A stretch of DNA of 64,000 bases from Bugula neritina (GCA_964035545.1 OZ037767.1:16213292-16277291), one strand, 5' to 3'. Shown: positions 10,001-57,102, numbered from the stretch's first letter. The notes: generated by a model not told the origin, from the letters alone. Made by a program: numbers and translations.

Positions 10001-12807
10001 ATCATTCTGTGTGCAGGTAGCAGTAGTCATTCATCATATGTAAGCCTAGGGCCACACGGTGCGTATTTTCGCATATACGAAAATTGAAATCACAAGTAGC
10101 AAAGGTGTCCACTGTATGCGTTGAGAAAACATTCGCACTTGTCGCTCAGCATTCTCAACGCAAGTGCGAATCGTCTCTGTCGTCGTCACTTAATTGGCTG
10201 GTAGTTATTCAGCGAGCCCAATTTCTTTATTTTAGTACTACATTCCAGTAAATTGCGTTTTATTAAAAGTGAGTGCGATTTAAAAATGAAAGCTTCATTT
10301 ATCACGCATCACTGGCGCTACAGTGGACACCTTTGCTACTTGTGATTTCAATTTTCGCATGCGAAAATACGCACCGTGTGGCCCTAGGCTTACTCAGTGC
10401 AGAGGAACCTGCATGTCAATACAGATGACTCAATCATCCTTCTGCAACTGTCAATCAATCACTCAGAGAGAGGTTGGCGGTGTGAGTGATTGACAGGTGT
10501 CAGGAGGAGGAGACTAGTCACATTATGTACTAACTCTCTGCTGTGTATTATGAAGTGTCACGTGACTGAGTCATTGTATTCTTAGTGGGTGATTTGTCAC
10601 TTTCATTTCAAGTGTAGAGGTTGTGAGGTGCAGATGTGGTTATCCTGTGTTACTATTTATTAGATAGAAAAGATTAGAAAGAGGGCTACAAACCTGAGGC
10701 TAGAAATATATGGATATTTGAAAAGCTGCACACAGATAGTGGATAATTATAGAATAGATCTGGCCTTGAGTAAGACAATTGGCAGACAGTCTCTGCTGGA
10801 CACAGTACAACATGCAGTTGATAAGTTCAATGATGCAGGGATTGTGAGAGAATACAAAGAGATGAGTGAGAAGATAAAAAAGGCTACAGATATTGGTGTA
10901 ATAGAGAAGTGTGTACTTCCAGACAGCATCTTGGTACCAACATGTAGGTGGAGTCTATAAATAGTAACACTAACTGTAAGTGATTGTCTGCCTGTAATCA
11001 GTTAAATTGCTTTTATCGAATATTTTAATAGGAGAATAAAGAGAAACCTCTGATAATTCGAAAAATTGATGGAATTTATTTATTAGAGAATTGAGTTTTG
11101 TTCTACTCTCACATTATGAGACATTTCTGCTGTGTTTCAGAGTTTATGATGTATAAGTGAGCTGCTAAACTGTGTTATGCTGACTACGTGCTGTCAGTAT
11201 TAACAAAATATTCTCACTTAGACCTGTGCATCACGTAGCAACTTGTAGTAACTACAGACTGCTTGTATTTAAAACATCTTTTCATTTCAAGTTTGAAAAG
11301 CTGTTCCCCACCTCCTCAGGTGATGAGATTCTCAAGTTATAGTATTGTTGTTTTGTTGTTGCAGACAGTGAAGACAGTCTGGGGCTGAAGCTGCTGCAGC
11401 CACCAGCTTCTCTTCAATCTGATGGACTTCCTGTACGTGGACAGTGTGTCTCAGTAAATATCTCAGCTGATGGACATATGATTTGTCGGACAGGAGGAGG
11501 TGTAGAAGTAATAAATAAAGACACTCTGGATACCATCAGCTCAGTGAAGAACACCAACACTACAAAGTGGTGGGATATAATCCAACCTGAAGGGGTGATG
11601 GTTGGCTGCTGGTATAACAAGAAGGAGAAAACAGCTGAAGTCTCACTTCTTGATCCGAACTCCTTTGAAAAGTCTCGCTCTGTCTACAAGCAGTCAGTAG
11701 ATGAGCTCTTCGCTTACTATAGAATAGCTCAGCACCTCTCACTGATCTATATTGTAGACAAGAGAGAGAAACAGCTGGTAGTCTGTGACCTAGTTGACAA
11801 TAAAATACAGAAGTTTCCTCTTCCTGAGATGGAGTACCCTCTACCTGTATGCATCCTCCCAGACTCAACTCTCCTCATAGGAGACTTCACTGTAGATGGT
11901 AAAGTGAGAAGATATAAAGTGGAGAACACAACTCTCACTCTGATGTGGGAGTTTCGTCACATCTCAGACCCAACTGGTATTTCCTTTGATCCAACATCTG
12001 AACTGATTCACATCTGTACACTGAATGGACCTCTCTTCATCCTCTCACTTGAAGGTAAATACTCTGTTTATTATAGTAAGTTTAGTTATTTTATATATAA
12101 TTATGTTGCAGTAAATAATATATTTTAATAATTAACAGTAAACAAATTCTACTCTTAAGATATAATATTGTTAGTATTTATCAAGTCACTGATGTTAATT
12201 TTAGCTAAAAGTTATGTAATAAAGACTGTAACATGCTGATAGTAGATGTTACATTCTTCATCACATGACTTGTAGCTAATAATAGTATTAGTGAATAATA
12301 CTGCCTCCCTACAATAAATTTATTTCCAGCTGCAGTAACATGTAGGATGTTAGCACAGGTAAAAGTGTATATTATACTGTATAAGGTGTACTATGTGTAG
12401 TGTGCAGTGAGCTCTTAGTAAACTCTCTATGTGATAATGTTGGAGTAGCTGCAGTAGTATTAGAAATAGACATGTGGGTGTGTTCTTGCTAAAAGCCACA
12501 GGCTAAGTTTGTGGGTCAAGGTCATTACAGTAGTATAATGAGACACTATTTTCTGCTCTGTTTGAATATTTACTTCATGCATATAACCTGCTTAGTTCCA
12601 TCTTTACAGGAAGTCTGTCTGTTTCTCTTAATACATACCACCTGCTACCATATGATGCTATTATTTACAGGTCAACTGGTGCTTACAGTTCCCAGAAAAA
12701 GTCTTGGTGTGAGTGGCCGGGTGCTGGACATTGCTGTGTATAACAGAAACACTGTGTTTCTAGCATGTGGATGTGATGGTCTAAAGAGATACACAATAAA
12801 ATACTAA
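7011..12807 (+). CDS. TRIM E3 ubiquitin ligase copy 1 (RING-B1-B2-coiled coil-NHL-like beta-propeller), 621 aa
   Basis: Exons 7011-7192, 7828-8008, 8206-8395, 9664-9869, 10664-10943, 11365-12054, 12671-12807: all GT-AG, phases consistent, 1866 nt. C3HC4 RING (CGYC..PRTLPCLHVYCMRC..CAYC), B-boxes (CDVC..CVDS..CQQH; CEHH..CSKC..CMRC), blade motifs (IYIVD, YPLPVCI, LLIGD, PTGISFD). Confidence 0.9.
7430..7620 (+). mobile_element. Relic of the CAC-ended MITE family in TRIM intron (also ~22385-22570, ~45045-45225)
   Basis: Clear similarity to 20530-20700 of the intact element. Confidence 0.65.
10044..10389. mobile_element. Tourist/PIF-Harbinger-like MITE in TRIM copy 1 intron 4
   Basis: ~70-bp TIRs GCCTAGGGCCACACGGTGCGTATTTTCGCA..., flanked by TAA/TTA. 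Empty site in copy 3 (~47622 catgttactcag). Confidence 0.85.
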
Positions 12808-14475
12808 ACTTACCAGCTACAGTTTACTAATAATCAGCTCAGTGAGGTACTGAGAGATAAAATGGATATTTGTCATCAACATAATTATATTCATTACAAT
12901 TCAATACACACACTAATGATAGTGTCAGGTATATTATATTGTGTGTTTCATTTACACTGTAATTATACTTCTGTATATTATTCCATGTTCAACAGAACTT
13001 GCACTGCTTATATGCATTATTTTATGGTAATTGTCATGAATTGTAGTTATTTAAGATATTTGACTGTATAAAATATGTGTTGCTATTTTACTATCTAATA
13101 AAAGTTTATTTGTTAGTGAAAAGATATTTTGTTTTCATGCCTCATTAGCTTTAGTTCAAGTTGAGTTTGGTTACTAAAAAATAATCTTTACTGGAGCAGT
13201 AACTGTAAATGACTCCTCTGTGGGAAAATGCATTCACTGAATTGACAATCAGGTGCAAGTAACTCCAACATGACTGTAGGCAAGTTTTTCCAAACATATA
13301 TAAAATACATTTTATTGCTGTGTATACAACAGCATTGAGTAGCCAATCAAATTGTTTCTTGTTGTGCATTTAGGAATCTGATAAATAATAATATATAAGG
13401 CAATCAACTAGATATAAACACTGTTTTACTCTACACATGAGCTGTCTGTGATACAGTCGCTTTGTAAAATGTGTTTCATTTGATCAGTTTAGTTCAATTG
13501 GTTGCAATTTAATTATGATGTGTTGCCCTATTCACCTGGTAGAAATACCATGTGTACTGACAGAGGACAACTCCTAAGCATGTCTAAAGGCTTCCTTTTA
13601 GTAAACAAGATATCACAATGCTATCATCTGATTGGACAATTCTGTTCTCATGAAACTGCAATTAGTGCTCTTGTGTGAATTGAGACAAGTTGCCACGTTG
13701 GCTTTATAAAATGCAAATAGTGCAGGAAAAGCTGAATCTGCTGCATATTGAGAGAGCAAAAGTATAATACTGTAGTAGATTACATAACACTTTAATAACT
13801 GCTGTTTTTATTCATGTTAGCTGCTTCGAAATCAGCAGCTATTAGTCTGTATACATGACGCTGTCACATATTCTCATACTGCATATTATATTTATAAAGT
13901 AAATAATCTGCAACTAAAGTAGCATAAGCATGTTTACATAATATCAAATCATTTATTGCATATATTTTTCTTATATAGTGGGTTCACAAGTGTTGGGCTA
14001 TTATGTTAACAAAATTCAATTTATCTTTCTGTATTTTCATTTGTAAAATAATCATAATTATGATAGGTGTAAATGTGTAATAGATTAATTATATACATAT
14101 AAATTCTAAGTGTGCAAACTTTTCTAAACATCAAACTGCTAATTAGTTTTATGCTCTCAAGTTTTAAAATGTTTTTTGAGTTTGCAAGTTGTCTTAATTT
14201 GGTATTTTGACAGCCTAAGCTAAACTTTCTTGATTATTATTATTGTTATTATTATTCTCTCGTATACCAGACATGCTGAAGTAACTTGAATAGGTGTGCA
14301 TACAGATATCTTTTATTTTATCCAATAATAGATTGCAATCCTTATGTTGCCTACAGGTGCCTAACAGCAAAGTTGAATGAAAAGATGAGAGAGCTAAAAA
14401 TCTGATGGTGTAGTAGATTACATAACATTTTAATAACTGCTGCCTTCCTTTATAGTTACTCCAGCATATTTTAAC

Positions 14476-14630
<155 letters not shown>

Positions 14631-16198: not shown

Positions 16199-16887
16199 TA
16201 GACCATGTAAAACTCAGCCAATCAGCGAAGTGTACCAGGTCAATGTCTTACCATTGTAACTGATATAAAATTCTGCAAGTTCAATTGCAAAATGCATGCT
16301 TCTAAAAGCTAGTTGTGCAACTTTTTTTTATGCATTATTTAATTTCATATCTTAAATTGATGACTCTTGAAATGAATTTTTAAAATGTCTAAATTAAGTG
16401 TTTATAAATTGCAATTAAAAATTTCATGTCTAGAAAAATGACCTGGTACACTTTTGCAACTTAAGGCCAATTATTACATAACTGCCAGCTTAGTAGTTAT
16501 TTGTTGTTGCAGCTTGAATGGGTTATTGTTTAGCATTGGAAGCTTGCAATGCTAAACAATAACTCATTCAAGCTGCAACAACAAATAACTACTAAGCTGG
16601 CAGTTATGTAATAATTGGCCTTAAGTTGCAAAAGTGTACCAGGTCATTTTTCTAGACATGAAATTTTTAATTGCATTTTATAAACACTTAATTTAGACAT
16701 TTCAAAAATTCATTTCAAGAGTCATCAATTTAAGATATGAAATTAAATAATGCATGAAAAAAAAGTTGCACAACTAGCTTTTAGAAGCATGCATTTTGCA
16801 ATTGAACTTGCAGAATTTTATATCAGTTACAATGGTAAGACATTGACCTGGTACACTTCGCTGATTGGCTGAGTTTCACATGGTCTA
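16199..16887. mobile_element. Spacer-less palindromic (foldback) non-autonomous DNA transposon
   Basis: TAGACCATGT...ACATGGTCTA, arms ~344 bp and near-perfect, centre AAGCTT at 16540-16545. Absent from the paralogous site near 54200 (acagcaattggtagg). TT or ATT duplicated at the flanks. Confidence 0.85.
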
Positions 16888-21955: not shown

Positions 21956-24900
21956 ATGGCTGGGAATGAGTCAAGAACCGTGAAAAAAAGATTAAACAAC
22001 TCGTATCGCTGTGGGTACTGCTCGCAGTACTTCAACAAACTTGAAGACCCCAGAACTCTGCCCTGTCTGCATGTGTACTGCATGAGATGTTTGAAGACTG
22101 ACATCGGTGGTAGGAAGGATCATATCAGATGTGCTTATTGTAGGTGGGTTACAGTAAATAACACAATATATCATGTCATAGGCTTGCATATGATTTTCTC
22201 ATTATCATCTAGGAGTTGTCTGATCTATTTCTATGAAAAGCTAACAATACTGTATATTCTATGTGAACTCTGGTTACTAACTTGTGGATAAGGATAGTAT
22301 TTTAACTAATTATTTAAATTCAATTTAAATGCTCCCACTTTTTGTACCTTCTATAACCCTCTATAATTTTATATAATTGAGTTTTGTTAATCATTGTACT
22401 TGAAGTTAAAGTTTTGGCATCTAAAAGGGTGGCTATCATAATTATTGAGTACTTTGCTTAGTAATTACCAATAAGTCATCACTTTTATTAGCAGACAACA
22501 TTTTACCTATGCAGTATTTTTCTACTTCTCAGATTGATCTGGCATCTTTTCATGAATCGATCGATCTGAGACGGTGATTGTGTAATAGCCTGTGGTCTAT
22601 ATATATGAATGTGTGTTGATGAGTGATGAGTATCTATTTGAGTATTTGTCAAGGACATAGCTGTGTGTGTGGATGGAGTATTTCATTACTTGAGACATCA
22701 TATTATATTAGACTTCCTGTATACTAAACAGAGATAACACACTGAATAATATATTGTAGGAAAGATCACTATGACATAACAGACCCCACTGCTCTACCTG
22801 TCGCAAAGCATGGAGACCCGCTGGAATATAAATCTCCACCCAAACCTGCACCCATGCCTTGCGATGTGTGTAAAGATGGAACAGAAGCTGCCACGTTCTG
22901 TGTCGACAGTCAAAAGAGGTTGTGTCAGCAGCATCAAGAAGTGAGTCTTTCTTATATCATTTCTCAAGATTGGTTACTAAACTAGTTCTGGTTTGTGTGT
23001 AGAATATTATTGAAAAGAAATGTTGAGTCTGTGTGACTTTTTATACTAAACACACAGTTTCACAGTGCAGTGAGTCAACTATGACAGACGTGTTGGTGAA
23101 AATACAACTAGCTAAACTGTTGACCTTTATTATACAGACTCACAGAGAGCTGATGGGAGATAGACATCAGTTTATTGACATTGAGGTCTACAGAGCTTCT
23201 CCCCAAAGATATACTATAACCGAATGTGAACATCATAAACAGGAACAGCTGACAGAAGTGTGTTCCAAGTGTCACCAGATATTCTGTACGAGATGTGATA
23301 TGAGGACTGGCTGTAAGGATAAGACAGGTATTTACTTGCTGTTTCTATTTTTGTAGAAAGAAACTGGGAAATATTACACGAACCTGTTATTGATTATTTT
23401 ATCATTAGAATAATTTATGTAACAGCAAAAGAAGATGTAGGTTTTTCAGATTGAGTTGATATGAATATTGAAACTAGATCTTGTGAAAGAAATTGAAAAA
23501 GACTTGCTAACGGCTGGAGGTATTTTTCAGCATTAAGGTTTGTGTGAGACAGAAGTGGATAGTGCAGCAGTTTATATTTTCACTGTTATGTTGAATATTC
23601 AGTATATTTCATCCTTCAAGTGTCTGTTTCCTTGATAAGATGGTATAGACATAACTTTAACTCACCGGTGTCCCACCTTTTTCAAACCAATCCGCTTTTT
23701 TATAAGTGTTTTCTATGAAGTTTCCCCCTTTTAAGAAACACTATTTTATATTTATAAAAAAAATCTGGGACAGGTTCTTTTCCCTAATAATTCTTTGAGT
23801 GTAAGAAAAGTCACTTAGTTTTTGACATGGAACAGTGTCTGCAACAACTTCAGTTATTAGCTTTGAAAGCATTGATGCTGCTATTAAAAGCTGTGAGTTG
23901 ATGATTATATTATATAACTCATTTATTTTAGATTCAGATGTTTTAGTGGAGCAAATATATCTACTAGGTATGCAGTAAATTGTTTATAGGGATCAGTTTG
24001 ACCGGCTGCAAAAAATTTCCTGTTGTTTTTTGCTTTAAAGAAACTTTTTAACCTGAATATTAGACACATGGATGTAGAAGTAAACTTAGATTATAGAGTG
24101 TAGTGTGGATAAATTAGTGAACTACATAAAACGGAGGTTTTATAGTTATACATATACATGTAACTTAGAATACAAGGGAAGCGCTTAGAGAGCTGAAAAA
24201 AACTGTGTGAGTTTTTTAAAAATCAAAACCCCTTTTAAGCCCAAATTCTACACAAGGAGGAGCTCCCCTGAGGTTGGAGCTACTGCTTTAAATTTTTTAA
24301 CTACATTATTCCAAGTGCAGTGAATAATGAGCTAACCATGTGACATCTTTCTAGAATGTCCCTTTGTGTAAATTAGTGCTAGAGAAAGGTCACCTATGAT
24401 CAACTCAGATAGCAATACTTGAGACAGAGTATAACTGTTTAGTAATTACATAGTATGTGTATAGTGATACATCATCTACCTGTAGTCGCAGATAGTAGGT
24501 GTACAATATCATATCTAAAAGTATATTACTTTTATTAATAGTGTGATTTTATTTATACAGAAGAGACAGTAGCATTCCATGACTTGGCATCTTTGAGTGA
24601 TTTGTCTTGTGAGTTACGAGAAAGTCTGACTGGTGGAATAGAGACTCTGTCTGAGAAAGTTGCAGAGTTGAATGACATCTCAAAGGATGCCTGGAAAGAA
24701 CTGAGTAAAATAGAAGATGAAGTGCAGAAGATGGTTGCCAGAGTAAACGCTGTAGCTGATGCTCAGGTATGCTGACATGGTGATGTCATCTAATGTATTT
24801 CTGTTTGTCTGAAATTAGGTTTTGCATTTGGTCTTTCAGTTGTAATCAGAAATGAATTTCATTTGTCATTAAAATTAACTGGCCATTAAAGCATTATCAT

Positions 24901-27900
24901 TCTGTGTGCAGGTAGCAGTAGTCATTCATCACATGTAAGCCTAGGGCCACACGGTGCGTATTTTCGCATGCGAAAATTGAAATCACAAGTAGCAAAGGTG
25001 TCCACTGTACGCGTTGATAAAACATTCGCACTTGTCGCTCAGCATTCTCAACGCAAGTGCGAATCGTCTCTATCGTCGTCACTTAATTGGCTGGTAGTTA
25101 TTCAGCGAGCCCAATTTCTCTATTTTAGTGCTACATTCCAGTAAATTGCGTTTTATTAAAAGCGAGTGCGATTTAAAAATGAAAGCTTCATTTATCACGC
25201 ATCACTGGCGCTAGGCTTACTCAGTGCAGAGGAACCTGCATGTCAATACAGATGACTCAATCATCCTTCTGCAACTGTCAATCAATCACTCAGAGAGAGG
25301 TTGGCGGTGTGAGTGATTGACAGGTGTCAGGAGGAGGAGACTAGTCACATTATGTACTAACTCTCTGCTGTGTATTATGAAGTGTCACGTGACTGAGTCA
25401 TTGTCTACTCAGTGTGAAAATCTGTCACTTTCATTTCAAGTGTAGATGTTGTGAGGTGCAGATGTGGTCATCCTGTGTTACTATTTATTAGATAGAAAAG
25501 ATTAGAAAGAGAGCTACAAACCTGAGGCTAGAAATATATGGATATTTGAAGAGCTGCACACAGATAGTGGATAATTATAGAATAGAGCTGGCCCTGAGTA
25601 AGACAATGGGCAGACAGTCTCTGCTGGACACAGTACAACACGCAGTTGATAAGTTCAATGATGCAAGGATTGTGAGAGACTACAAAAAGATGAGTGGGAA
25701 GATGGAAAAGGCTACAGATATTGGTGTAATAGAGAAGTGTGTACTTCCAGACAGCATCTTGGTACCAACATGTAGGTGGAGTCTATAAATAGTAACACGT
25801 ACTAACTATAAATAACTTTCTGCCTGTAATCAGTTAAATTGCTTTCATTGAATATTTGAATAGTAGAATAACGAGAAGCCTCTGATAATTTGAAAAGTAG
25901 ATAGAGTTTATTTATTAGAGGATTGAGTTTTGTTCTACTCTCACATTATGAGACATTTCTGCAGTGTTTCAAAGTTTATGATGTATAAGTGAGCTGCTAA
26001 ACTGTGTTATGCTGACTACCTGCTGTCAGTATTAACAAAATATTCTCACTTAGACCTGTGCATCACGCAGCAACTTGTAGTAAATACAGAATGCTTGTAT
26101 TTAAAACATCTTTTCATTTCAAGTTTGAAAAGCTGTTCCCCACCTCCTCAGGTGATGAGATTCTCAAGTTATAGTATTGTTATTTTGTTGTTGCAGACAG
26201 TGAAGACAGTGTGGGGCTGAAGCTGCTGCAGCCACCATCTTCTCTACAGTCTGATGGACTTCCTGTATGTGACTGGTGTCCCTCAGTAAACATCTCAGCT
26301 GATGGACATGTGTTGTGTCGGACACCAGGAGGTGTAGAAATAAGAAATAGAGACACTCTGGATACTATCAGCTCAGTGAAGAACACCAGCACTACAGAGT
26401 GGTGGGAGATAATCCAACCTGAAGGGGTGATCGTTGGCAGCTGGTATAACAAGAAGGAGAAAACAGCTGAAGTCTCACTTCTTGATCCGAACTCCTTTGA
26501 AAAGTCTCGCTCTGTCTACAAGCTGTCAGTAGATGGACTCTTTCCTTACTGTAGAATAGCTCAGCACCTCTCTCTGGTGTATATTGTAGACTGTGAAAAG
26601 AAACAGCTGGTAGTCTGTAATCTAGTTGACAATAAAATACAGAAGTTTCCTCTTCCTGAGATGAAGTACCCTGACCCTGTATGCATCCTCCCAGACTCAA
26701 CTCTCCTCATAGGAGACTTCACTGCAGATGGTACAGTGAGAAGATATAAAGTGGAGAACACAACTCTCACTCTAATGTGGGGGTTTCCTCACACCTCAGA
26801 ACCAACTGGTATTTCCTTTGATCCAACATCTGAACTGATTCACATCTGTACACTGGAAGGACCTCTCCTCATCCTCTCACTTGAAGGTAAATACTGTGTT
26901 TATTATAGTAAGTTTAGTTATTTTATATATAATTATGCTGTAATAAATAATATATTTTATTAATTAACAGTAAACAACTTCCACTCATAAGATATATTAT
27001 GATATTGTTCGTATATATCAAGTCAATGTTGTGATTTTTAGCTTAAAGTTGTGTAATAAAGACTGTAACATGTTGATAGTAGATGTTACATTCTTCATCA
27101 CATGACTTGTAGCTAATAATAATATTAGTGAATAATACTGCCTCCCTACAATAAGTTTATTTCCAGCTGTAGTAACATGCAGGATGTAAGCACAGGTAAA
27201 AGTGTATATTATATATTGTATAGGTTTAAGGTGTACTCTGTGTAGTGTGCAGTGAGCTCTTAGTAAACTTTCCATTCAGTCTTCTATTTCAAGGGTTCAC
27301 CTGGTAGTGTAGAAGATAGGGACTCCACACTGCCAAGTGCTGCAAGGGGTTCAAACCCACCCATCAGCATGTCTATAGTTAGTATACTATGGAAGTGTTT
27401 TACAGTAATTTTAGAGGTGCTCAGTCTAGCAACTGTACAGACTGCCAACTACACATGAGTTATGAGTTTTAGTTTGACTTCAGTCTAGTGCTGCAACTGT
27501 TTTGGTCATCAGATAATTTAAAGATAAATAATTTAATACTTTTTGACCCGCCATCACTGAGACTATTGTAATTTGATGATGGCTGGTAGACAGTGTTTGC
27601 TGGTGGGACTCAGGTGGCTGTAGTTGGTTCTTGTCAAGTATTTAATATACATGTGATAATGTTCGAATAGCTGCAGTAGTATGAGAAGTAGACATGCATG
27701 TGGGCGTGTTCTTGCTAAAGACCGCAGGCTAAGTTTGTGGGTCAAGGTCAATACATTAGTATAATGAGACACTATTTTCTGCTCTGTTTGAATATTTACT
27801 TCATGCATATAACCTGCTTAGTTCCATCTTTAAAGGAAGTCTGTCTGTTTTTCTCAATGCATACCACCTGCTACAAAAATGTTATTATTTACAGGTCAAC

Positions 27901-28037
27901 TGGTGCTAACAGTTCCCAGAGAAAGTCTTGGTGTGAGTAATGACTGGGTGTGGGTGAATGACATTGCTGTGTATAACAGAGACACAGTGTTTCTAGCATG
28001 TGGTGATAGTCTAAAGAGATACACAATAAAATACTAA
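21956..28037 (+). CDS. TRIM E3 ubiquitin ligase copy 2, 625 aa
   Basis: Exons 21956-22143, 22760-22940, 23138-23327, 24561-24766, 25492-25771, 26197-26886, 27895-28037. Open frame, 1878 nt, same domains as copy 1, distinct N-terminus MAGNESRT. Confidence 0.9.
24939..25216. mobile_element. Same Tourist-like MITE insertion as 10044-10389, with most of the right TIR deleted
   Basis: Same site in intron 4; the deletion joins two CTA microhomologies. Confidence 0.8.
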
Positions 28038-29692: not shown

Positions 29693-30035
<343 letters not shown>

Positions 30036-32168: not shown

Positions 32169-34415
32169 AGTCCTCGAATGAAGGAGTTTCTTCCCCTACA
32201 TCAACCAAATCGGCCATCTTGGATTTGAGAAAATCTACTGCTAAAGAAACATCATTAAAACGAAAAACACCAAACAAAGGTAATCCTAAACTTGAATGTC
32301 TATTTTGTTAGGTTTGCTGAGTATATGCAGCGTCATAAATAATATTATTTTGATCTAGTATCTGCAAGGTATAGTTGTTGTTTTATTTTAAATGTCTAGT
32401 CAAAATTGTGCTTTCAACATCTTTACATAACACACGTTACATTCGTAAGCATATTTAAGCATATGTAAGCATGAATACAAGCATATATAAGCAAGTATGT
32501 GTAAACATGCTTAAACATCCTTAAACATGCATAAGTGTGCGTAAGCACATGTATGCACGTTTCAGCATGATTAAGTAAAGACATCATAATTTCAGAAGTT
32601 GCTAATCCATCAAAGAAAAAGCGAGAAAACTCGAAGCAGAACTTGAAGCAAACTCGCAAGCTGAGCGTTACTGAGCAGTCACCTATATCTGGCATTCTGA
32701 TTCGAAGAGTCACTAAGTCCCATAATTCTACACCAGATGTCAAATGTAGCTCAGAACTCTGTGGGGATATTGACTCGATGTAAGTGTTGCTAATTATTTG
32801 TTTTTATTTTTTCTTTCAGAAAAAACTGTTGGAAATTCAAATTTTCCACTGATCAAAAAAGAATTATTGCTTATACAAAAGTTATCGATTTCAACTTTTC
32901 TGTACTACATTTTGACTTTCAATGTAATTTCTTTCAAGAATTAGATTGGATGCTTGCTATTATTATATTATTGAACTATTTTTGGAAAAAATAATATTTA
33001 ATTGCAAAAAATAATAAAATATTTGTTAGGGTTTTGTCTATTATAGGTTATCTACAGACATGATAATATAAATAAATGAGTAGACTACAGCAAATCAATC
33101 TACCTTTGCCGGCTAAAGTTTTGTAAGCCATACCTGCATTGGGCTGTTATTTTACCTGCATGCAGGTACCATGTAGTGGTTATCATTTCACCTGCTGCAT
33201 ATGGCTTAATGTTGGGCTATTTTTTACCAGCAGGTATAACAATGTTGGGCTATTACTTTACCTGCAAGTATAACAATGTTGGGCTATTACTTTACCTGCA
33301 AGTATAACAATGTTTAAGCTACCTATTATTTTACCTGCAGGTATAACAATGTCATAGACTATTATTCTACCTGCAGGTACAATGTGGTGGACAAATCGGA
33401 AGAATCCAAGAGGAAGCTGATGAGCATCAAGAACGTAATTGGAGACTATATCTGTAGACTGTGTGACACCAAGTATGCAAGTGTGTACGACCTGGCTGAA
33501 CACAGATGTCCGAGCATCATCTACATAGAGTACAAGTGTCCTGAGTGCTCAAAAGGTTAGAGATCATGTAATGTTAAGTTCACCCACTAGCAGTTGTAGT
33601 GCAAAGGTTAGGGCACTTGCTTGCAAGCTGGCGGTCTGCGGTTCAAATCCTAGTGGGGGCAAGAAGTTTAATAGGTAAAAGTCTGATTAAACTAAAATGA
33701 ACAAATTTTCCCATGTAACAAATAAACTTTTATATACTTTTTGTTCAATATTCAACTGAATTAAATAACGTAACACAGCTATAGACCTGGGTAAATGACA
33801 TGTAAAATGCAGTAAATAACAATAATTGGTAACAGGCAGCAAAAATGCTTATGCTGCTGCCAATGTTTAAAAACTGTTTAACTTTTAGAAGTATAACTAT
33901 AGCTAGTCATACCATGTTATGATATTAATTTAAATAAATATTTTTTTCTCTCAAATTACCAGTAAACTATAAAAATAAGAATAGATAAATTTATAAAATA
34001 CAAATTATTGAAAAAGCATATTAAAAACTTATTTACTAAAGCTTTTGGCAACCAAAACTTTAGTAAGTTAATACATATACTATATAGAGTTTTACTTTGT
34101 GGTAAATAGAGAAATTCAATTTATGTCTTTTATATGGTAATACATTTATATTATTTATATTATATTACAAATTATTATATAATCAATATCTTTGTATCAT
34201 GTTATTTGAATGTTTTATCTGTTGACTTTAATCTTTCAGTGTTCAACTGCCCAGCAAACTTGGCATCCCACAGGCGTTGGCACAAACCTAAACCTGCAGC
34301 AGACTCTCAACCCAACACTTCAAAACACAGAGAGAAAACAACTACCAAACAAATAGTTATTGCAGCTCCGCAGCGAATACCAAACCCTGGAAGGATAACT
34401 TCTCATGATGACTAA
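32169..34415 (+). CDS. INSM: INSM/IA-1/Nerfin-family zinc-finger transcription factor, 5'-incomplete (possible pseudogene)
   Basis: In-phase exons 32169-32279, 32596-32779, 33377-33555, 34240-34415. Family signatures RKL..[57 protein letters not shown]. No SNAG/start exon found, and the upstream exon-like segment 31569-31763 has stops/frameshift. Confidence 0.8.
33135..33385 (+). repeat. ~34-bp tandem repeat built from the splice acceptor region
   Basis: Units like ttgggctattactttacctgca(a/g)gtataacaatg; the last unit supplies the in-frame acceptor at 33375-33376. Confidence 0.75.
33590..33661 (+). mobile_element. tRNA-derived SINE head / tRNA pseudogene
   Basis: A-box-like TAGTGCAAAGG and B-box GGTTCAAATCC at tRNA spacing, but poor acceptor stem. 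Confidence 0.5.
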
Positions 34416-37400: not shown

Positions 37401-38069
37401 AAGCATGGATTTTATGACCATCATTTTAGTCTTCTTGCATATTGTGACTTCATATATAACTATGAAACTTGAACTGTTATAAATGTGTTTGTTTGCTGCA
37501 AGAAGCATAAAATAAATCAAGTAATTTTCATGTTAATTATTTGCATTGCTTTACTTCCTGTCTACCTTTCTTTAAGTAGAAATAGCAGCATCTTTCATCA
37601 ATAGGATGTTTTATTTTACTCTAAATAGTTACTTTACTAATGGCAGTGGGAGACAAAATTAACCAACCAGAGTTATTATATAAATTACTAAAATATAGTT
37701 CATTATGGTTTTAGCTGGAATCTTTAACTTTTTCTCTAAAATGCTTGGATAAGATTATTTGCATATCCAAAGGTTCTTCATCACCACTTGGAGTTTGGTT
37801 TTATAAAATATTATTAGAAGTTGGCCTAAGTTTATATATTAACCAATCACATGCATCCGTTACTGCATTTGCTCAACCTGGTTACTTCTGAGACATAGGG
37901 CTCCTCCCAGGAGGTAGGGTTCTTCCCAGAGTAGTTGACCCAGTTTTACGTTGACCAATCAAATTCGAACACATTTGATTGTGACTATAAATACAGCAGT
38001 GTGTTCTGTTAAGGTTCAGTCTACAACTTATCTGTGTAGTACATCTGAATCTGAACTCTATTCTCCACA

Positions 38070-38992
38070 ATGAGTAGCAACAGCACATTTGGTGAGTGAC
38101 TATGCATACAATACTTGTATTTTTATAATTTAATAAGCAACATTAAAGAGAATATTCTATCTTGAAATTTTGGAACTAAATTATATCTGTGAATAATTAA
38201 AAACATTTTCATCATTATAGTTGGAAAATCTTTTTTAATGTTTTTCTATTTTTAAAATGTATATACTATTAATAAGTTTTACGTAACTTTAGTTTAGCTT
38301 GCACAGCCTTTAAAACTTATTCTAATCTGATTATAATCTACAATCTAGTAATACTGCAAATTGATTGTAATATCACAGCTAACTCTTTCGGTACAAACTA
38401 TTTGTTTAAATTAAAAATACTTGCTTAGTACTAAATTGCAGTGCAATTCAATAGTATATTACATAGTGGAGTACAAAATAGGATGCATAAAATTGCATAA
38501 CACTTGACTTTAATTTCAGACATTAAAAAACTCCCTCCAAAAAAGCGATACATTCTTCCACCCGCACACATAGCAAGACAATATGTGGAGATAATCCAAC
38601 CAGAACCATACTATGATTATAATGAGTAAGTACTGCTTTACTGCTCAGTCTTTCTGTTGTAACCAAAATTCTTAGTCGAACTGCTCTCTGATTACCAGAT
38701 GAAATTTCTCCATACTGATCTGTCAGGTTTGTGTTTGCAGGGCTTAAATTAACAATAAAGGCATATATTTAGATATAAAAACATTCTATGCAATCAGTAG
38801 TTCTATTAGATGATGGTGTAATTCTAAACTTTGACTGACAGAAGAGAAACTGTTATGAGTCTTCATATATTAATATCTGGATAATTATTATTTTGTTATA
38901 CTTTTAGAAATATGACAAGTTACCTCCAAGATGGTGGACTACATACATATTATGTAATAAACTCTGATACTCAGGTGAAAAGGGAGAGCTGA
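38070..38992 (+). CDS. Unannotated 70-aa microprotein, copy C
   Basis: Exons 38070-38091, 38520-38625, 38908-38992. In-frame 24-nt deletion relative to copy B; LPPKKRY kept with two synonymous changes; stop at the same position. Confidence 0.7.
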
Positions 38993-41488: not shown

Positions 41489-41582
<94 letters not shown>

Positions 41583-42059: not shown

Positions 42060-42098
<39 letters not shown>

Positions 42099-44626: not shown

Positions 44627-47600
44627 ATGGCAGAATCCAGAGTTGTGAAAAAAAGACTAAACAATTTGTATCGCTGTGGGTACTGCTCACAGTACTTCAA
44701 CAAACTTGAAGATCCCAGAACTCTGCCCTGTCTGCATGTGTACTGCATGAGATGTTTGAAGACTGACATCGGTGGTAGGAAGGATCATATCAGATGTGCT
44801 TATTGTAGGTGAGTTACAGTACATAACACAATATATCATGTCATAGGCTTGCATATGATTTTCTCACTATCATCTAGGAGTTGTCTGATCTGTGTCTATG
44901 GAAAGCTAACGATACTGTATATTCTATGTGAACTCTGGTTAAAAAATTGTGGATAATGAATGTATTTTTGCTAATTATTTAAATCCAATTTAAATGCTCT
45001 CACTTTTTGTACCTTCTACCCTCTATAATTTTATATAATAGAGTTTTGTTAATCATTGTAATTGAAGTCAAAGTTTTGGCATCTGAAAAGGTGTCTATTA
45101 TTAAGTAATTTGCTTAGTAATTAACAATAAGTTCTCACTTTTATTAGCAGACAAAGTTTTAGCTAACAGTCTTTTTCTACTTCTCAGGTATATCTGGTGT
45201 CTTCATGGATCGATTGATCTGAGACAGTGATTGTGTGATAGCCTGTGGTCTATATAATGAATGTGTGTTGATGAGTGATGAGTATCTATTTGAGTATTTG
45301 TCAAGGACATAGCTGTGTGTGTGGATGGAGTATTTCATTACTTGAGACATCATATTATATTATACTTCCTGGTATACTAAACAGAGATAACACACTGATT
45401 AATATATTGTAGGAAAGATCACTATGACATAACAGACCCCACTACTCTACCTGTCGCAAAGCATGGAGACCCGCTGGAATATAAATCTCCACCCAAACCT
45501 GCACCCATGCCTTGCGATGTTTGTAAAGATGGAACGGAAGCTGCCACATTCTGTGTCGACAGTCAAAAGAGGTTGTGTCAGCAGCATCAAGAAGTGAGTC
45601 TTTCTTGTATCATGTCTCAAGATTGGTTACTAAACCAGTTCTGGTTTGTGTGTAGAATATTATTGAAAAGAAATGTTGAGTCTGTGTGACTTTTTATACT
45701 AAACACACAGTTTCACAGTGCAGTGAGTCAACTATGACAGACTTGTTGGTGAAAATACAACCAACTAAACTGTTGACCTTTATTATACAGACTCATAGAG
45801 AGCTGATGGGAGATAGACATCAGTTTATTGACATTGAGGTCTACAGAGCTTCTCCCCAAAGATATACTATAACTGAATGTGAACATCATAAACAGGAACA
45901 GCTGACAGAAGTGTGTTCCAAGTGTCACCAGATATTCTGTATGAGATGTGATATGAGGACTGGCTGTAAGGATAAGACAGGTATTTACTTGCTGTTTCTA
46001 TTTTTGTAGAAAGAAACTGGGAAATATTACACGAACCTGTTATTGATTATTTTATCTTTAAAATAAGTTATGTAACAGCAAAAGAGGCCGTAGGTTTTTT
46101 AGACTGAGTTGATATGAATATTGAAACGAGATCTTGTGAAAAAAATTAAAAAAGACACGCTAACGGCTAGAGGTGTTTGTCAGCATATTACGGTTTGTGT
46201 GAGACAGAAGTGGATAGTGCAGGAGTTTATATTCTCACTGTTATGTTGAATATTCAGTATATTTCATCCTTCAAGTGTCTGTTTCCTTGATAAGATGGTA
46301 TAGACATAACTTTAACTCAGTGGTGTCCCACCTTTTTCAAACCATTCCGCCTTTTTATAAGTGTTTTCTATAAAGTTTCCCCCTTTTAAAAAACACTATT
46401 TTATATTTATAAAGAAAATCTGGGACAGGTTCTTTTCCCTAATAATTCTTTGAGTGTAAGAAAAGTCACTTAGTTTTTGACGACATGGAACAGTGTCTGC
46501 AACAACTTCAGTTATTAGCTTTGAAAGCATTGATGCTGCTATTAAAAGCTGTGAGTTGATGATTAAACTCATTCATTTTAGATTCAGATTTTTTAGTGGA
46601 GCAAATATATCTACTAGGTATGCAGTAAATTGTTTATAGGGATCAGTTTGACTGGCTGCAAAAAATTTCCTGTTGTTTTTTGCTTTAAAGAAACTTTTTA
46701 ACCTGCATTCGTAGCAGGAGGGGTAGCAGCTAGGGTAGAGTGAATATTAGACACATGGATGTAGAAGTAAACTTAGATTATAGAGTGTTATAGTGTGGAT
46801 AAATAAGTGAACTAAATAAAACAAAGGTTTTATAGTTATACATATACATGTAACTTAGAATACAAGGGAAGCGCTTAGAGAGCTGGAAAAAACTGTGTGA
46901 ATTTTTTAAAAATCAAAACCCCTTTTAAGCCCAAATTCTACACAAGGAGGAGCTCCCCTAAGGTTGGAGCTACTGCTTTAAATTTTCTAACTACATTATT
47001 CCAAGTGCAGTGAATAATGAGCTAACCATGTGACATCTTTCTAGAATGTCCCTTTGTGTAAATTAGTGCTAGAGAAAGGTCAGCTATGATCAACTCAGAT
47101 AGCAATACTTGAGACAGAGTCCAACTGTTTAGTAATTACATAGTATGTGTATAGTGATACATCATCTACCTGTAGTCGCAGATAGTAGGTGTACAATATC
47201 ATATCTAAAAGTATATTACTTTTATTAATAGTGTGATTTTATGTATACAGCAGAGACAGTAGCATTCCATGACTTGGCATCTTTGAGTGATTTGTCTTGT
47301 GAGTTACGAGAAAGTCTGACTGGTGGAATAGAGACGCTGTCTGAGAAAGTTGCAGTGTTGAATGACATCTCAAAGGATGCCTGGAAAGAACTGAGTAAAA
47401 TAGAAGATGAAGTGCAGAAGATGGTTGCCAGAGTAAACGCTGTAGCTGATGCTCAGGTATGCTGACATGGTGATGTCATCTAATGTATTTCTGTTTGTCT
47501 GAAATTAGATTTTGCATTTGGTCTTTCAGTTGTAATCAAAAATGAATTTCATTTGTCATTGAAATTAACTGGCCATTAAAGCATTATCATTCTGTGTACA

Positions 47601-50570
47601 AGTAGCAGTAGTCATTCATAACATGTTACTCAGTGCAGAGGAACCTGCATGTCAATACAGGTGACTCACTCATCCTTCTGCAACTGTCAATCATTCAAAC
47701 AGAGAGGTTGGCTATGTGAGTGATTGACAGGTGTCAGGAGGAGGAGACTAGTCACATTATGTACTAACTTTCTGCTGTGTATTATGAAGTGTCATTGTAT
47801 TCTTAGTGGGTGATTTGTCACTTTCATTTCAAGTGTAGAGGTTGTGAGGTTCAGAGGTGGTTATCCTGTGTTACTATTTATTAGATAGAAAAGATTAGAA
47901 AGAGAGCTACAAACCTGAGGCTAGAAATATATGGATATTTGAAGAGCTGCACACAGATAGTGGATAATTATAGAATAGAGCTGGCCTTGAGTAAGACAAT
48001 GGGCAGACAGTCTCTGCTGGACACAGTACAACATGCAGTTGATAAGTTCAATGGTGCAGGGATTGTGAGAGACTACAAAGAGATGAGTGGGAAGATGGAA
48101 AAGGCTACAGATATTGGTGTAATAGAGAAGTGTGTACTTCCAGACAGCATCTTAGTACCAACATGTAGGTCGAGTTTATAAATAGTAACACTAACTATAT
48201 AAATAACCTTCTGCTTGTAATCAGTTAAATTGCTTTTATTGAATATTTGAATAGGAGAATAAAGAGAAGCCTCTGATAATTAGAAAAGTAGATAGAGTTT
48301 ATTTATTAGAGAATTGAGTTTTGTTCTACTCTCACATTATGAGACATTTCTGCAGTGTTTCAGAGTTTATGATGTATAAGCCTCGGGCCACACGGTGCGT
48401 TTTTTCGCATGCGAAAATTGAAATCACAAGTAGCAAAGGTGTCCACTGTAGCGTCAGTGATGCGTGATAAATAAAGCTTTCATTTTTAATTTTCAATTTT
48501 CGCATGCAAAAATACGCACCGTGTGGCCCTAGGCTAAGTGAGCTGCTAAACTGTGTAATGCTGACCACCTGCTGTCAGTATTACCAAAATATTCTCACTC
48601 AGACCTGTGCATCACGTAGCAACTTGTAGTAACTACAGACCGCTTGTATTTAAAACATCTTTTCATTTCAAGTTTGAAAAGCTGTTCCCACCTCCTCGGG
48701 TGATGAGATTCTCAAGTTATAGAATTGTTATTTTGTTGTTGCAGACAGTGAAGACAGTCTGGGGCTGAAGCTGCTGCAGCCACCAGCTTCTCTACAGTTT
48801 GATGGACTTTCTGTACGTGACTGGTGTTACACAGTAAACATGTCAGCTGATGGACATCTTATGTGTTGGACACTACAAGGTGTAGAAGTAAGAAATGGAG
48901 ACACTCTGGATACCATCAGCTCAGTGAAGAACACCAGCACTACAGAGTGGTGGGAGATAATCCAACCTGAAGGGGTGATCGTTGGCAGCTGGTATAACAA
49001 GAAGGAGAAAACAGCTGAAGTCTCACTTCTTGATCCGAACTCCTTTGAGAAGACTCGCTCTGTCTACAAGCTGTCAGTAAATGAGCCCTTCGCTTACTAT
49101 AGAATAGCTCAGCACCTCTCTCTGGTGTATATTGTAGACTGGAGTGAGAAACAGCTGGTAGTCTGTAATCTAGTTGACAATAAAATACAGAAGTTCCCAC
49201 TTCCTGGGATGAAGTACCCTCTACCTGTATGCATCCTCCCAGACTCAACTCTCCTCATAGGAGACTTTGCTGAAGGTGGTACAGTAAGAAGATATAAAGT
49301 GGAGAACACAACTCTCACTCTAATGTGGGAGTTCCCTCACATCTCACAGCCAACTGGTATTTCCTTTGATCCAACATCTGAACTGATTCACATCTGTACA
49401 TGGAGAGGACCTCTCCTCATCCTCTCACTTGAAGGTAAATACTCTGTTTATTATAGTAAGTTTAGTTATTTTATATATAATTATGCTGTAATAAATAATA
49501 TATTTTATTAATTAACAGTAAACAACTTCCACTCATAAGATATATTATGATATTGTTCGTATATATCAAGTCAATGATGTGATTTTTAGCTAAAAGTTGT
49601 GTAATAAAGACTGTAACATGTTGATAGTAGATGTTACATTCTTCATCACATGACTTGTAGCTAATAATAATATTAGTGAATAATACTGCCTCCCTACAAT
49701 AAGTTTATTTCCAGCTGCAGTAACATGCAGGATGTAAGCACAGGTAAAAGTGTATATTATATTGTATAGGTTTAAGGTGTACTCTGTGTAGTGTGCAGTG
49801 AGCTCTTAGTAAACTTTCCATTCAGTCTTCTATTTCAAGGGTTCACCTGGTAGTGTAGAAGAGAGGGACTCCACACTGCCAAGTGCTGCAAGGGGTTCAA
49901 ACCCACCTATCAGCATGTCTATAGTTAGTATACTATGCAAGTGTTTTACAGTAATTTTAGAGGTGCTCAACCTAACAACTGTACAGACTGCCAGCTACAT
50001 ATGTGTTATGAGTTGTAGTTTGACTTCAGTCTAGTGCTGCTATTGTTTGGGTCATCAGATAATTTAAAGATAAATAGTTTAATACTTTTTGACCCGCCAT
50101 TACTGAGACTATTGTAATTTGATGATGGCTGGTAGAGCAGTGTTTGCTGGTGGGACTCAGGTGGCTGTGGTTGGTTCTTGTCAAGTATTTAATATGTGTT
50201 AATGTTGGAGTAGCTGCAGTAGTAGTTAGAAATAGACATGCATGTGAGTGTGTTCTTGCTAAAGACCGCAGGCTAAGTTTGTGGGTCAAGGTCAATACGT
50301 TAGTATAATGATACACTATTTTCCGCTCTGTTTGAATATTTACTTCATGCATATAACCTGCTTAGTTTCATCTTTACAGGAAGTCTGTCTGTTTCTCTCA
50401 ATGCCACCTGCTACAATATGATGTTATTATTTACAGGTCAACTGGTGCTCACAGTTCCCAGAGAAAGTCTTGGTGTGAGTGACAGGGTGTGGGAAATTGC
50501 TGTGTATAACAGAGACACAGTGTTTCTAGCATGTGGAGACGAACTGAGGAGATACACAATAAAATACTAA
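44627..50570 (+). CDS. TRIM E3 ubiquitin ligase copy 3, 620 aa
   Basis: Exons 44627-44808, 45413-45593, 45791-45980, 47251-47456, 47885-48164, 48745-49434, 50437-50570. Open frame, 1863 nt. Confidence 0.9.
48380..48534. mobile_element. Internally deleted Tourist-like MITE in TRIM copy 3 intron 5
   Basis: Same TIRs, TAA target duplication; empty site gatgtataagtgagc in copies 1 and 2. Confidence 0.85.
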
Positions 50571-57093: not shown

Positions 57094-57102
57094 CTATGAT
57101 AC

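Follow-up and report, generated by a model that had tools for sequence, protein, structure and literature searches.

A tandem array of TRIM-type genes in the bryozoan Bugula neritina, with a constant RING/B-box half and a predicted propeller face under diversifying selection

Genes at the locus and their predicted proteins

The window, i.e., the whole stretch of 64,000 nt of Bugula neritina DNA that was analysed, contains three intact genes arranged in tandem on the + strand, each with seven exons and each encoding ~620 amino acids (Table 1). The exon models were built from the alignment of the three copies together with the reading frames and the GT-AG sites, and in these models 21 of the 21 exons are open and every splice site in the three copies is GT-AG. 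The original prediction had placed the array between positions 11365 and 50570; exon 6 of copy 1 begins at the former and the latter lies at the stop codon in exon 7 of copy 3, with exons 1–5 of copy 1 (7011–10943) falling outside that range. The three genes in the window are spliced and expressed. For copy 2, the joints 24766/25492, 25771/26197 and 26886/27895 are found in transcript contigs, and in four runs, one from each of four studies, the contig cover is confined to exons. Repeats and MITE-like elements are abundant in the introns and surroundings of the three genes, and no kappa-B-type site is present upstream of any of them.

Table 1. Positions in the window of the three genes, their exons, the duplicated units and the selected codons of exon 6
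Feature	Position	Strand	Basis or remark
Copy 1 duplicated unit (~7.6 kb)	7029-14568		
Copy 1 coding span	7011-12807	+	7 exons, 621 codons before stop; all exons intact
Copy 1 exon 1, C3HC4 RING finger with the start codon	7011-7192	+	Pfam on copy-2 equivalent
Copy 1 exon 2, linker and start of B-box 1	7828-8008	+	weak B-box matches; exon-1 phase compatible
Copy 1 exon 3, last part of B-box 1 and larger part of B-box 2	8206-8395	+	zf-B_box, copy-2 equivalent
Copy 1 exon 4, helical (coiled-coil) region part 1	9664-9869	+	weak coiled-coil-type Pfam matches
Copy 1 exon 5, helical region part 2 and linker	10664-10943	+	AlphaFold2 helix; donor from copy-2 transcript joint 25771/26197
Copy 1 exon 6, predicted propeller blades 1-4 and blade 5 strands a-c	11365-12054	+	AlphaFold2 model, site-model posteriors
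Copy 1 selected codon starts, exon 6	11442, 11448, 11487, 11493, 11496, 11550, 11565, 11571, 11610, 11619, 11703, 11706, 11712, 11760, 11763, 11835, 11841, 11886, 11892, 11967, 12021, 12024	+	
Copy 1 exon 7, predicted blade 5 strand d, blade 6, and stop codon	12671-12807	+	frame and acceptor
Copy 2 duplicated unit (~7.6 kb)	21980-29784		
Copy 2 coding span	21956-28037	+	transcript joints for part of exons
Copy 2 exons 1-5	21956-22143, 22760-22940, 23138-23327, 24561-24766, 25492-25771	+	
Copy 2 exon 6, predicted propeller	26197-26886	+	
Copy 2 selected codon starts, exon 6	26274, 26280, 26319, 26325, 26328, 26382, 26397, 26403, 26442, 26451, 26535, 26538, 26544, 26592, 26595, 26667, 26673, 26718, 26724, 26799, 26853, 26856	+	
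Copy 2 exon 7	27895-28037	+	3-codon insertion in blade 6 d-a loop, vs copies 1 and 3
Copy 3 duplicated unit (~7.6 kb)	44645-51604		
Copy 3 coding span	44627-50570	+	
Copy 3 exons 1-5	44627-44808, 45413-45593, 45791-45980, 47251-47456, 47885-48164	+	
Copy 3 exon 6, predicted propeller	48745-49434	+	
Copy 3 selected codon starts, exon 6	48822, 48828, 48867, 48873, 48876, 48930, 48945, 48951, 48990, 48999, 49083, 49086, 49092, 49140, 49143, 49215, 49221, 49266, 49272, 49347, 49401, 49404	+	
Copy 3 exon 7	50437-50570	+	

As in TRIM proteins, a RING finger with eight zinc ligands is followed by B-box zinc fingers. The RING in exon 1 of copy 2 is matched by the Pfam models zf-RING_UBOX (PF13445, 31.5 bits, cut-off 25.2) and zf-C3HC4 (PF00097, 22.8 bits, cut-off 21), and across the three copies all eight C3HC4 ligands are identical and the Cys/His ligands of the B-boxes are invariant. 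Exon 3 of copy 2 matches zf-B_box (PF00643) with an E-value of 1.8e-4 and 22.1 bits, just below the 24.1-bit cut-off; each exon was scanned singly and the domain is interrupted by intron 3, which accounts for the shortfall. Exon 2 gives weaker B-box matches. In TRIM proteins a coiled coil that mediates antiparallel dimerisation comes next. Exon 4 gives only weak Pfam matches of the coiled-coil type, and exon 5 is predicted by AlphaFold2, with a modest pLDDT of 69, to form a single long helix (residues 2–76) followed by an unstructured linker. This linker of ~17 residues leads straight from the helix into the N-terminal strand of the propeller; there is no room for a filamin/ABP280 domain at this place, and no Pfam match to one is found. 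No exon has a Pfam match to SPRY/PRY.

The AlphaFold2 model of exon 6, which covered this exon alone, unjoined to exon 7, has a pLDDT of 88.4 and is all-beta, with 19 strands making up four blades plus three strands; exon 7 would complete blade 5 with its strand d and add blade 6. Exons 6 and 7 together are thus predicted to encode a six-bladed NHL-like beta-propeller at the C-terminus, as in the class VII TRIM proteins, with the closed ring following from strand counting rather than from one joined model. The Pfam NHL model on exon 6 stays below every threshold. A profile made solely from the family matches the NHL-derived Pizza6 (1e-6) and PknD (8e-3), and the nearest non-family matches in phmmer are bacterial NHL-repeat proteins with PF01436, at 24–33% identity. 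Moreover, the atlas fold search with exon 6 reaches a TM of 0.77 with both NHL clusters and molluscan B-box+NHL clusters, NHL clusters are also the nearest ones in the atlas in features and in shape, and the fold matches include the NHL domains of Thin, Brat (4zlr) and Mei-P26.

Diversification of the propeller exons

The three genes belong to a lineage-specific family of predicted TRIM-type E3 ubiquitin ligases, with at least 100 members, most of them intact, in a Bugula neritina-type bryozoan. The 216-Mb assembly has 114 exon-6 matches, ~90 of which are full length and without stops; the literature searched contains no description of this family. Between copies 1 and 2, 36 of the 228 residues encoded by exon 6 differ, with 36 amino-acid-changing codons and seven silent-only ones, while the RING and B-boxes beyond the N-terminal tip differ at three residues (T to A in exon 2; N to T and M to T in exon 3). 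The recount thus reproduces the numbers of the original prediction, i.e., 36 changed against about seven silent codons in the propeller exon and about three differences over the RING and B-boxes, and the seven three-state motifs that it quoted are all found as quoted in the three copies. The contrast between the constant N-terminus and the variable propeller exceeds chance and holds family-wide: across 30 paralogs of the main clade, amino-acid identity has a median of 98% for exon 1, 97% for exon 3 and 96% for exons 4 and 5, as compared with 83% for exon 6 and 84% for exon 7.

The RING/B-box/helical half is under purifying selection, with omega of 0.06–0.6; the pooled family omega values for exons 1 to 7 are 0.06, 0.11, 0.52, 0.50, 0.58, 1.10 and 0.78, respectively. 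In exon 6, the site models place ~10% of the codons at omega ~9.8, with 2dlnL of 743 for M1a/M2a, 829 for M7/M8 and 723 for M8a/M8, and positively selected sites are also present in exon 7 (2dlnL 129). In total, 22 codons in exon 6 (posterior >0.95) and four in exon 7 are selected, with omega about 10. Exons 3–5, taken as negative controls, give 2dlnL of 4.8, 5.0 and 0.0 in the site-model test, none of which is significant. The site models were run in a custom implementation that fixed the branch lengths except for a single common scale factor, and the site posteriors are naive instead of Bayes empirical Bayes.

It is noted that recombination can inflate site-model tests, while the pairwise and intron-based tests are independent of the tree. 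With its own tree for each, the thirds of exon 6 give 2dlnL of 210, 90 and 366. In the tree-free pairwise test, where the hypervariable sites were defined with the tested pair left out, these sites have an omega of 3–4 (bootstrap interval 2.3–6.4). For the window copies, with the hypervariable sites taken from 31 other paralogs, dN at these sites is 0.41–0.57, which is 5–8 times each pair's whole-exon dS. Moreover, in nine independent, cleanly alignable pairs, exon 6 diverges 1.73 times as much as the flanking introns (p 2e-12). At the hypervariable codons dS is 1.7–2.4 times that of the other codons, and therefore local mutation may contribute in part. The reading of the propeller as subject to diversifying selection, which the original prediction had put forward, is thus supported.

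The original prediction also expected the changes to gather on one loop face of the propeller, and on the modelled fold they do so rather than being scattered. Among the 22 selected sites of exon 6, 17 are in the d-a and b-c loops, four in upper strand halves and one in mid-strand; the top loops (50 residues) hold 17 sites and the bottom a-b and c-d loops (42 residues) hold none (Fisher 7e-6). For exon 7, the selected sites would fall on blade 6, likewise in its d-a and b-c loops, and thus all the ~25 selected residues are predicted to lie toward the d-a/b-c side, i.e., one face of the propeller. The 22-residue signature is unique in 34 of 35 paralogs, and in pairwise comparison the median number of differing sites is 16 out of 22. 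Arg, Trp, Glu, Gly and Tyr are frequent at the hypervariable sites, with Arg the most enriched (15% versus 3%). Based on the model, nearly each paralog would present a different binding surface on a conserved scaffold.

Proposed role and alternatives

We propose, with a probability of about 0.6, that this is a two-part TRIM family in which a constant effector half is joined to a selected propeller face that binds fast-evolving non-self. Based on this proposal, the RING, two B-boxes and long helix would form the effector and assembly module, held near-constant, while the top-face residues are replaced ~10 times faster than neutral sites and exchange among the copies keeps the propeller module alike, even across subfamilies on different chromosomes. 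The variable face would bind fast-evolving ligands, most likely viral or other intracellular non-self proteins or RNAs, and the binding would bring the RING to the target, leading to ubiquitin-dependent disposal or signalling. This order of ligand binding and then RING action is taken from the TRIM5alpha and finTRIM families, and a sensor, immune or antiviral function is suggested by the same analogy. A constant enzyme half with a changing binding face resembles the inherited repertoires of intracellular recognition proteins.

Gene conversion acts on the propeller module and not on the N-terminus. We consider tentatively that the family could go further and be diversified in the germline in a cassette-like manner, with inter-locus exchange combined with selection that preserves and reshuffles the ~25 top-face residues. 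The >100 loci, which lie on six chromosomes or more, would then be kept to one near-uniform propeller scaffold, and this scaffold would pass even between subfamilies whose N-terminal halves are old and have diverged. If this is true, the family would give the animal cytosolic E3-coupled binders in an anticipatory repertoire, a propeller counterpart of the leucine-rich-repeat and immunoglobulin repertoires that is undescribed in any phylum.

It is also conceivable, though unlikely, that the top face binds RNA, as in Brat, LIN-41/TRIM71 and Mei-P26, and that the family serves genome defence or RNA regulation, tracking the transcripts of transposable or selfish elements and not external pathogens. 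Brat, whose structure 4zlr is among the fold matches, binds RNA through the face on which the selected residues lie; an RNA ligand would also be consistent with the Arg enrichment and with the repeat-filled introns and surroundings of the genes. However, Trp, Glu and Gly are enriched too, which is not RNA-specific, and the sequence similarity to Brat/TRIM71 becomes marginal once the bacterial NHL proteins are dropped from the profile.

Recognition within the animal's own biology, i.e., colony or gamete discrimination or control of the vertically inherited bacterial symbiont, seems to us quite improbable. The host is colonial and has a heritable symbiont, the family's transcripts occur in runs labelled 'symbiont metagenome', and allorecognition loci in other colonial animals are marked by extreme paralog diversity. 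Known allorecognition receptors, however, work at the cell surface, while here no signal peptide or membrane segment is seen in the exons searched and the predicted RING/B-box/coiled-coil architecture is cytosolic; moreover, the diversity described here is that among paralogs.

That there is no adaptive diversification, the loops being unconstrained and the N-terminal half homogenised by gene conversion, is very improbable: the whole-exon omega of exon 6 across the three window copies is only 1.0–1.4, 38% of the informative site pairs are incompatible, and exons 2–4 with introns 2–4 are ~twofold less diverged (1.5–4%) than the 3' part (5–9%), so that some homogenisation adds to the constant/variable contrast, but relaxed constraint cannot push omega above 1, and the hypervariable dN is 5–12 times dS and the intron divergence, exon 6 diverges faster than its own introns, open frames are kept in ~90 exon-6 copies, and the bottom-face loops, which are as exposed, carry no selected sites. 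The N-terminal dS is also non-zero (0.02–0.19 among the window copies; pooled over the family, 0.14 in exon 1 and 0.38 in exon 2) with omega of 0.06–0.6, and thus gene conversion alone does not explain the constant half, contradicting the explanation by conversion plus neutral drift that the original prediction had set against its own. The relaxed-constraint and conversion reading is thus contradicted by the site-model, pairwise, intron and topology tests.

Comparison with known systems

The best sequence-profile matches to the bryozoan propeller are the bacterial NHL propellers, i.e., the PknD sensor domain and the derived Pizza designs, while animal TRIM-NHL chains are not matched by the family-only profile. 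These bacterial propellers act as sensor or enzyme domains outside the cell or in the periplasm, lack RING, B-box and coiled coil and, unlike the bryozoan family, form no diversified paralog repertoire. The closest eukaryotic structural neighbours are the molluscan B-box+NHL clusters of the ESM Atlas (~555–567 aa), with TM of 0.74–0.77 over ~207 residues, which are similar to the bryozoan family in architecture and length and are likewise lophotrochozoan and multi-member, but are too dissimilar in sequence for phmmer (1.84 billion representatives).

The class VII TRIM-NHL proteins (Brat, LIN-41/TRIM71, Mei-P26, TRIM2, TRIM3, TRIM32 and Thin) have the domain order that is predicted for the bryozoan proteins, with RING, B-box and coiled coil ahead of a six-bladed propeller of NHL type. 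The filamin domain is present in TRIM2, TRIM3 and TRIM71 and absent from TRIM32, as from the bryozoan genes. The ligand-binding face of Brat and LIN-41 is the d-a/b-c loop side, where the bryozoan selected residues are placed by the model, the likeness being one of position only. The class VII proteins are single-copy, slowly evolving developmental regulators, whereas the bryozoan family is multi-copy and diversifying.

By contrast, the likeness in evolution is to TRIM5alpha and TRIM22 of primates and to the finTRIM and btr/TRIM35-like arrays of teleosts, which have a constant RING/B-box/coiled-coil effector half like the one predicted here. In TRIM5 and finTRIM, as found here, a few surface loops of the recognition domain are under strong positive selection, and the genes likewise form tandem, lineage-specific arrays. 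The bryozoan family may therefore work like the antiviral TRIM5 and finTRIM proteins but, being without SPRY, is no member of them; the recognition domain is B30.2/PRY-SPRY in those proteins and, as predicted, an NHL-like beta-propeller in the bryozoan, whose family is much larger than those of primate TRIM5alpha and TRIM22.

The duplicated TRIM genes and the other features of the window

The window DNA is eukaryotic and AT-rich and lies at 16.21-16.28 Mb of contig C3 in the 216-Mb assembly. On its forward strand there are three head-to-tail duplicated units, each of ~7.6 kb, and the seven-exon model of ~620 codons, built on an alignment of the three copies together with their reading frames and GT-AG sites, is intact in all three TRIM genes (copies 1, 2 and 3). 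Exon 1 encodes a C3HC4 RING, above the Pfam cut-offs, exons 2-3 encode two B-boxes (the second with E 1.8e-4), exon 4 gives weak matches of the coiled-coil type, exon 5 is predicted as a single long helix followed by a linker, and exons 6-7 encode the NHL-like propeller. It is noted that all searches, alignments and folds were made exon by exon, with the codons split between exons excluded from the codon counts. The exons of copy 2 are covered by contigs from four RNA-type runs of four studies while its introns 5 and 6 are nearly uncovered, and the transcript contigs contain the joints 24766/25492, 25771/26197 and 26886/27895, the second of which matches the exon 5/6 junction that had been used in the original prediction. 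From the exon-restricted cover and the spliced joints it follows that the genes are spliced and expressed.

Exon 6 has 114 matches in the assembly, of which ~90 are full length with no stop; most are in a cluster on contig C8 (0-4.7 Mb), and the others are on C3, C2, C1, C4, C5, C6 and C9. The paralog sample consists of 35 distinct members, all or most exons being available for 20 of these, so that the statistics on exon 6 come from 35 genes and those on the N-terminal exons from 16-18. Among the 30 copies of the main clade, exons 1, 3, 4 and 5 have median amino-acid identities of 96-98%, versus 83-84% for exons 6 and 7. The original prediction was that of a TRIM paralog array with a constant RING/B-box part and a hypervariable propeller face, with about 36 of 230 propeller residues differing between copies 1 and 2. 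The recount agrees with it, giving 36 of 228 residues, 36 amino-acid-changing codons and 7 silent-only codons in exon 6, and 3 residue differences over the RING and B-boxes, and the seven three-state motifs quoted in it are all found as quoted.

In the protein collections searched, the family has no full-length annotated member: the word search of proteins within a length window gave exon-sized ORF fragments only, and the exhaustive search of representatives gave fragments first and then bacterial NHL proteins, with no full-length annotated relative. In the literature we found nothing joining bryozoans with tripartite-motif gene families and nothing joining NHL, TRIM, diversifying selection and propeller, and the family is not mentioned in the B. 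neritina genome paper (PMC7576161).

Note also that a near-identical twin of copy 1 lies 139 kb upstream of it (L033, G000:C3:16078997-16087483), and that the two differ at 6 of 690 bases in exon 6, 0 of 380 in intron 5 and 2 of 550 in intron 6; this pair is a very recent segmental duplication. A similar pair, L040 and L041, is present on C8, its members being 1.4 Mb apart.

Features of the window other than the exons of the TRIM genes
Feature	Positions	Description
Short repeat with Cys-rich ORF	1598-1804, 2404-2610, 37882-38088 (minus strand)	three copies, common 68-aa ORF
Kappa-B-like decamer	9363-9372, 24259-24268, 46949-46958 (minus strand)	GGGGAGCTCC; intron 3 of copies 1, 2 and 3
Intron 4 repeat, copy 1	10027-10428	~300-400 bp
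Intron 4 repeat, copy 2	24897-25213	~300-400 bp
Inverted copy of this repeat, copy 3	48332-48568	in intron 5
Intron 6 piece, copy 2	27375-27669	~290 bp; equivalent piece in copy 3
ORFs with C2H2 zinc-finger motifs	33384-33560, 34134-34415 (+ strand)	between copies 2 and 3
Exons of BUB1-like protein kinase	55133-57093 (minus strand)	
ORF through minisatellite	55133-55774	coding-looking, 5-residue units
Satellite	56970-64000	23-bp units, ~290 tandem copies, 95-97% alike; GC 19%, GC skew +0.5; reaches window end

Several of these features deserve a comment. The best named match of the BUB1-like kinase is a hypothetical protein of Bugula neritina, the short exons being 92-97% identical, which fits a host that is B. 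neritina or one of the sibling species in its complex. The ORFs with C2H2 motifs, for which the match to Pfam zf-C2H2_4 is weak, could be exons from an unrelated gene for a zinc-finger protein, and the repeat with the Cys-rich ORF probably represents a dispersed mobile element. The repeat that copies 1 and 2 have in intron 4 is lacking from intron 4 of copy 3. In copy 2 this repeat has a very high contig depth in RNA-type runs, and is therefore a mobile element that is transcribed or very abundant. The intron 6 piece is 88-93% identical even in distant paralogs (subfamilies on other contigs) on C1, C2 and C4, and is thus conserved more strongly than the N-terminal exons; ~500 bp is absent here from copy 1, and the piece may be either a mobile element or an intronic element that is conserved. 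The strict kappa-B consensus is absent upstream of all three genes, its occurrences in the window being confined to exon 6 in copies 2 and 3; for the loose consensus, the window contains 7 matches versus 0.8 expected. The kappa-B-like decamer occupies the same intron 3 place in the three copies, which may simply reflect the 96-97% identity of intron 3.

Site-specific selection and gene conversion

The codon site models were fitted with custom code, using GY94 with F3x4, the GTR+G topology and relative branch lengths, and one free scale.

Log-likelihoods of the site models for exon 6
Model	lnL
M1a	-6474.3
M2a	-6102.6
M7	-6521.2
M8	-6106.8
M8a	-6468.3

For exon 6, where M0 gives an omega of 1.35, the values of 2dlnL are 743 (M1a/M2a), 829 (M7/M8) and 723 (M8a/M8), with 10% of codons at omega 9.8 and 22 codons having a posterior >0.95. 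With the same code, exon 7 gives 2dlnL 129 and omega 11, and the controls, exons 3, 4 and 5, give 2dlnL of 4.8, 5.0 and 0.0. When exon 6 is divided into thirds, each with its own tree, 2dlnL is 210, 90 and 366. In the tree-free test, where 16 disjoint nearest-neighbour pairs were compared and the hypervariable sites were defined from all other sequences, omega is 2.95-4.0 (bootstrap 95% 2.3-6.4) at these sites versus 0.5-0.7 elsewhere. Moreover, when the sites are chosen by their variability in 31 other paralogs, taking the 22 columns that show at least five states, dN at these columns is 0.41-0.57 between the window copies themselves. This exceeds the whole-exon dS of the respective pair by a factor of 5-8, and it is far higher than the divergence of the introns of these copies (0.035-0.07). 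The diversifying selection that had been proposed is thus borne out by dN/dS, both in the exon 6 site class and tree-free, and in exon 7.

An alternative explanation is that gene conversion keeps the N-terminal part constant while the propeller drifts neutrally. In the three window copies, the N-terminal exons have a dS of 0.02-0.19, which is non-zero, and an omega of 0.06-0.6, with exon 6 having a dS of 0.07-0.09 and an omega of 1.0-1.4; pooled over the family, omega in exons 1-7 is 0.06, 0.11, 0.52, 0.50, 0.58, 1.10 and 0.78. The intron divergence is 1.5-6% in introns 2-4 and 3.5-9% in introns 1, 5, 6 and the 3' flank, so the gene middle is about twofold more homogeneous. This adds to the contrast in amino-acid changes but cannot create a tenfold difference. 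The divergence of exon 6, 7.7-9.0%, is above that of its own introns, and over 9 independent, cleanly alignable paralog pairs that were pooled (7 of the 16 pairs being unusable globally because of inserted or deleted repeats), the divergence of exon 6 is 1.73 times that of the intron sequence on its flanks (p 2e-12).

Between subfamilies the pattern is reversed. In comparisons with five distant paralogs from other contigs, exon 1 shows saturation of dS, exons 2-5 have a dS of 1.18, 0.80, 0.58 and 0.44, and exons 6 and 7 one of only 0.19 and 0.24; the flanking intron pieces are 83-97% identical versus 70-80% for exons 1-4. From the low dS of the propeller and the intron similarity between subfamilies we infer that gene conversion or module exchange acts on the propeller module, the basis being these exon-level and intron comparisons and not within-exon mosaics; the PHI-like test inside exon 6 gives 38% incompatible site pairs with no distance effect (p 0.21). 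The hypervariable residues persist despite such exchange. Neutral drift plus conversion is thus rejected: the N-terminal dS is non-zero with a low omega, exon 6 outpaces its introns, and the conversion acts on the propeller, which is the opposite of what this alternative requires.

The propeller fold and its selected face

In the Pfam scan of exon 6 neither NHL nor any other family was matched. The AlphaFold2 model made with the paralog alignment is all-beta, with 19 strands, pLDDT 88.4 and pTM 0.85. The profile built from family members only matches the NHL-derived Pizza6 proteins (1e-6) and PknD (8e-3); in a collection of 1.84 billion representatives, the few distant phmmer matches are NHL-repeat proteins of bacteria with PF01436; and, whether features or shape are compared, the nearest ESM Atlas clusters are those of NHL propellers, the neighbours including molluscan B-box+NHL proteins of 555-567 aa. 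These several lines place exon 6 among NHL-type propellers. Foldseek against the PDB returns generic propellers (WD40, NHL, SMP30) with TM ~0.6 and cannot tell the propeller families apart, because the exon-6 model is without blade 6. The strand count assigns the first four blades and strands a-c of the fifth to exon 6, and blade 6 together with the remaining strand d of blade 5 to exon 7.

The 22 selected codons fall into ten clusters, two per blade, at every second loop of the model. The loops were assigned via the NHL blade motif (P-x-G strand a, a short turn, and strand b ending in D/T), by which the selected loops are d-a and b-c, that is, the conventional top face. The top loops (50 residues) hold 17 of the selected sites and the bottom loops (42 residues) none, the remaining ones being in the top halves of strands (4) and mid-strand (1); the Fisher probability is 7e-6 for loops and 1.4e-6 for the top side. 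In exon 7, the four positions under selection are in the d-a and b-c loop types of blade 6. In the model the sites are thus gathered on one propeller face rather than scattered, as had been predicted. Residues enriched at the selected positions are Arg (15% versus 3%), Trp (12% versus 1%), Glu, Gly and Tyr. Moreover, 34 of the 35 paralogs have a unique 22-position signature, any two paralogs differing at a median of 16 of these positions.

Possible function and comparison with known receptors

The evolutionary part of the original prediction is thus supported on all three points by which it was to be judged, namely dN/dS, the placing of the variable sites on the fold and the cause of the N-terminal constancy. 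That diversifying selection on one face is real in this large TRIM family with an NHL-like propeller is strongly supported. By analogy with TRIM5alpha, TRIM22 and the fish finTRIMs, the family may be a repertoire in the cytosol for recognising fast-evolving non-self and linking it to a RING ligase. A repertoire directed at RNA or transposons is a less probable reading, which we regard as unlikely although Brat and LIN-41 bind RNA with the face that is under selection here. Still more doubtful is recognition tied to coloniality or to a heritable symbiont.

If the family is such a cytosolic repertoire, it would offer ~25 positions that putatively determine specificity, set on a scaffold that is stable and designable and shares its fold class with the engineered Pizza proteins. 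It would also give an entry point to antiviral or anti-selfish-element defence in a lophotrochozoan phylum with a medically relevant symbiosis; to our knowledge, bryozoan immunity is almost unstudied. Moreover, the family is a tractable case for the joint action of gene conversion and diversifying selection.

Finally, we note how the family compares with known systems. Its repertoire has reached at least 100 genes, with a selection intensity (omega ~10 on one face) on par with that of classic immune receptors. The diversified intracellular TRIM receptors that we know of are those of vertebrates only, with B30.2 as the only recognition domain. By contrast, the variable domain of the bryozoan family is a beta-propeller, and, with the binder role being predicted, the design of a constant RING ligase plus a variable binder would have originated independently on another fold.
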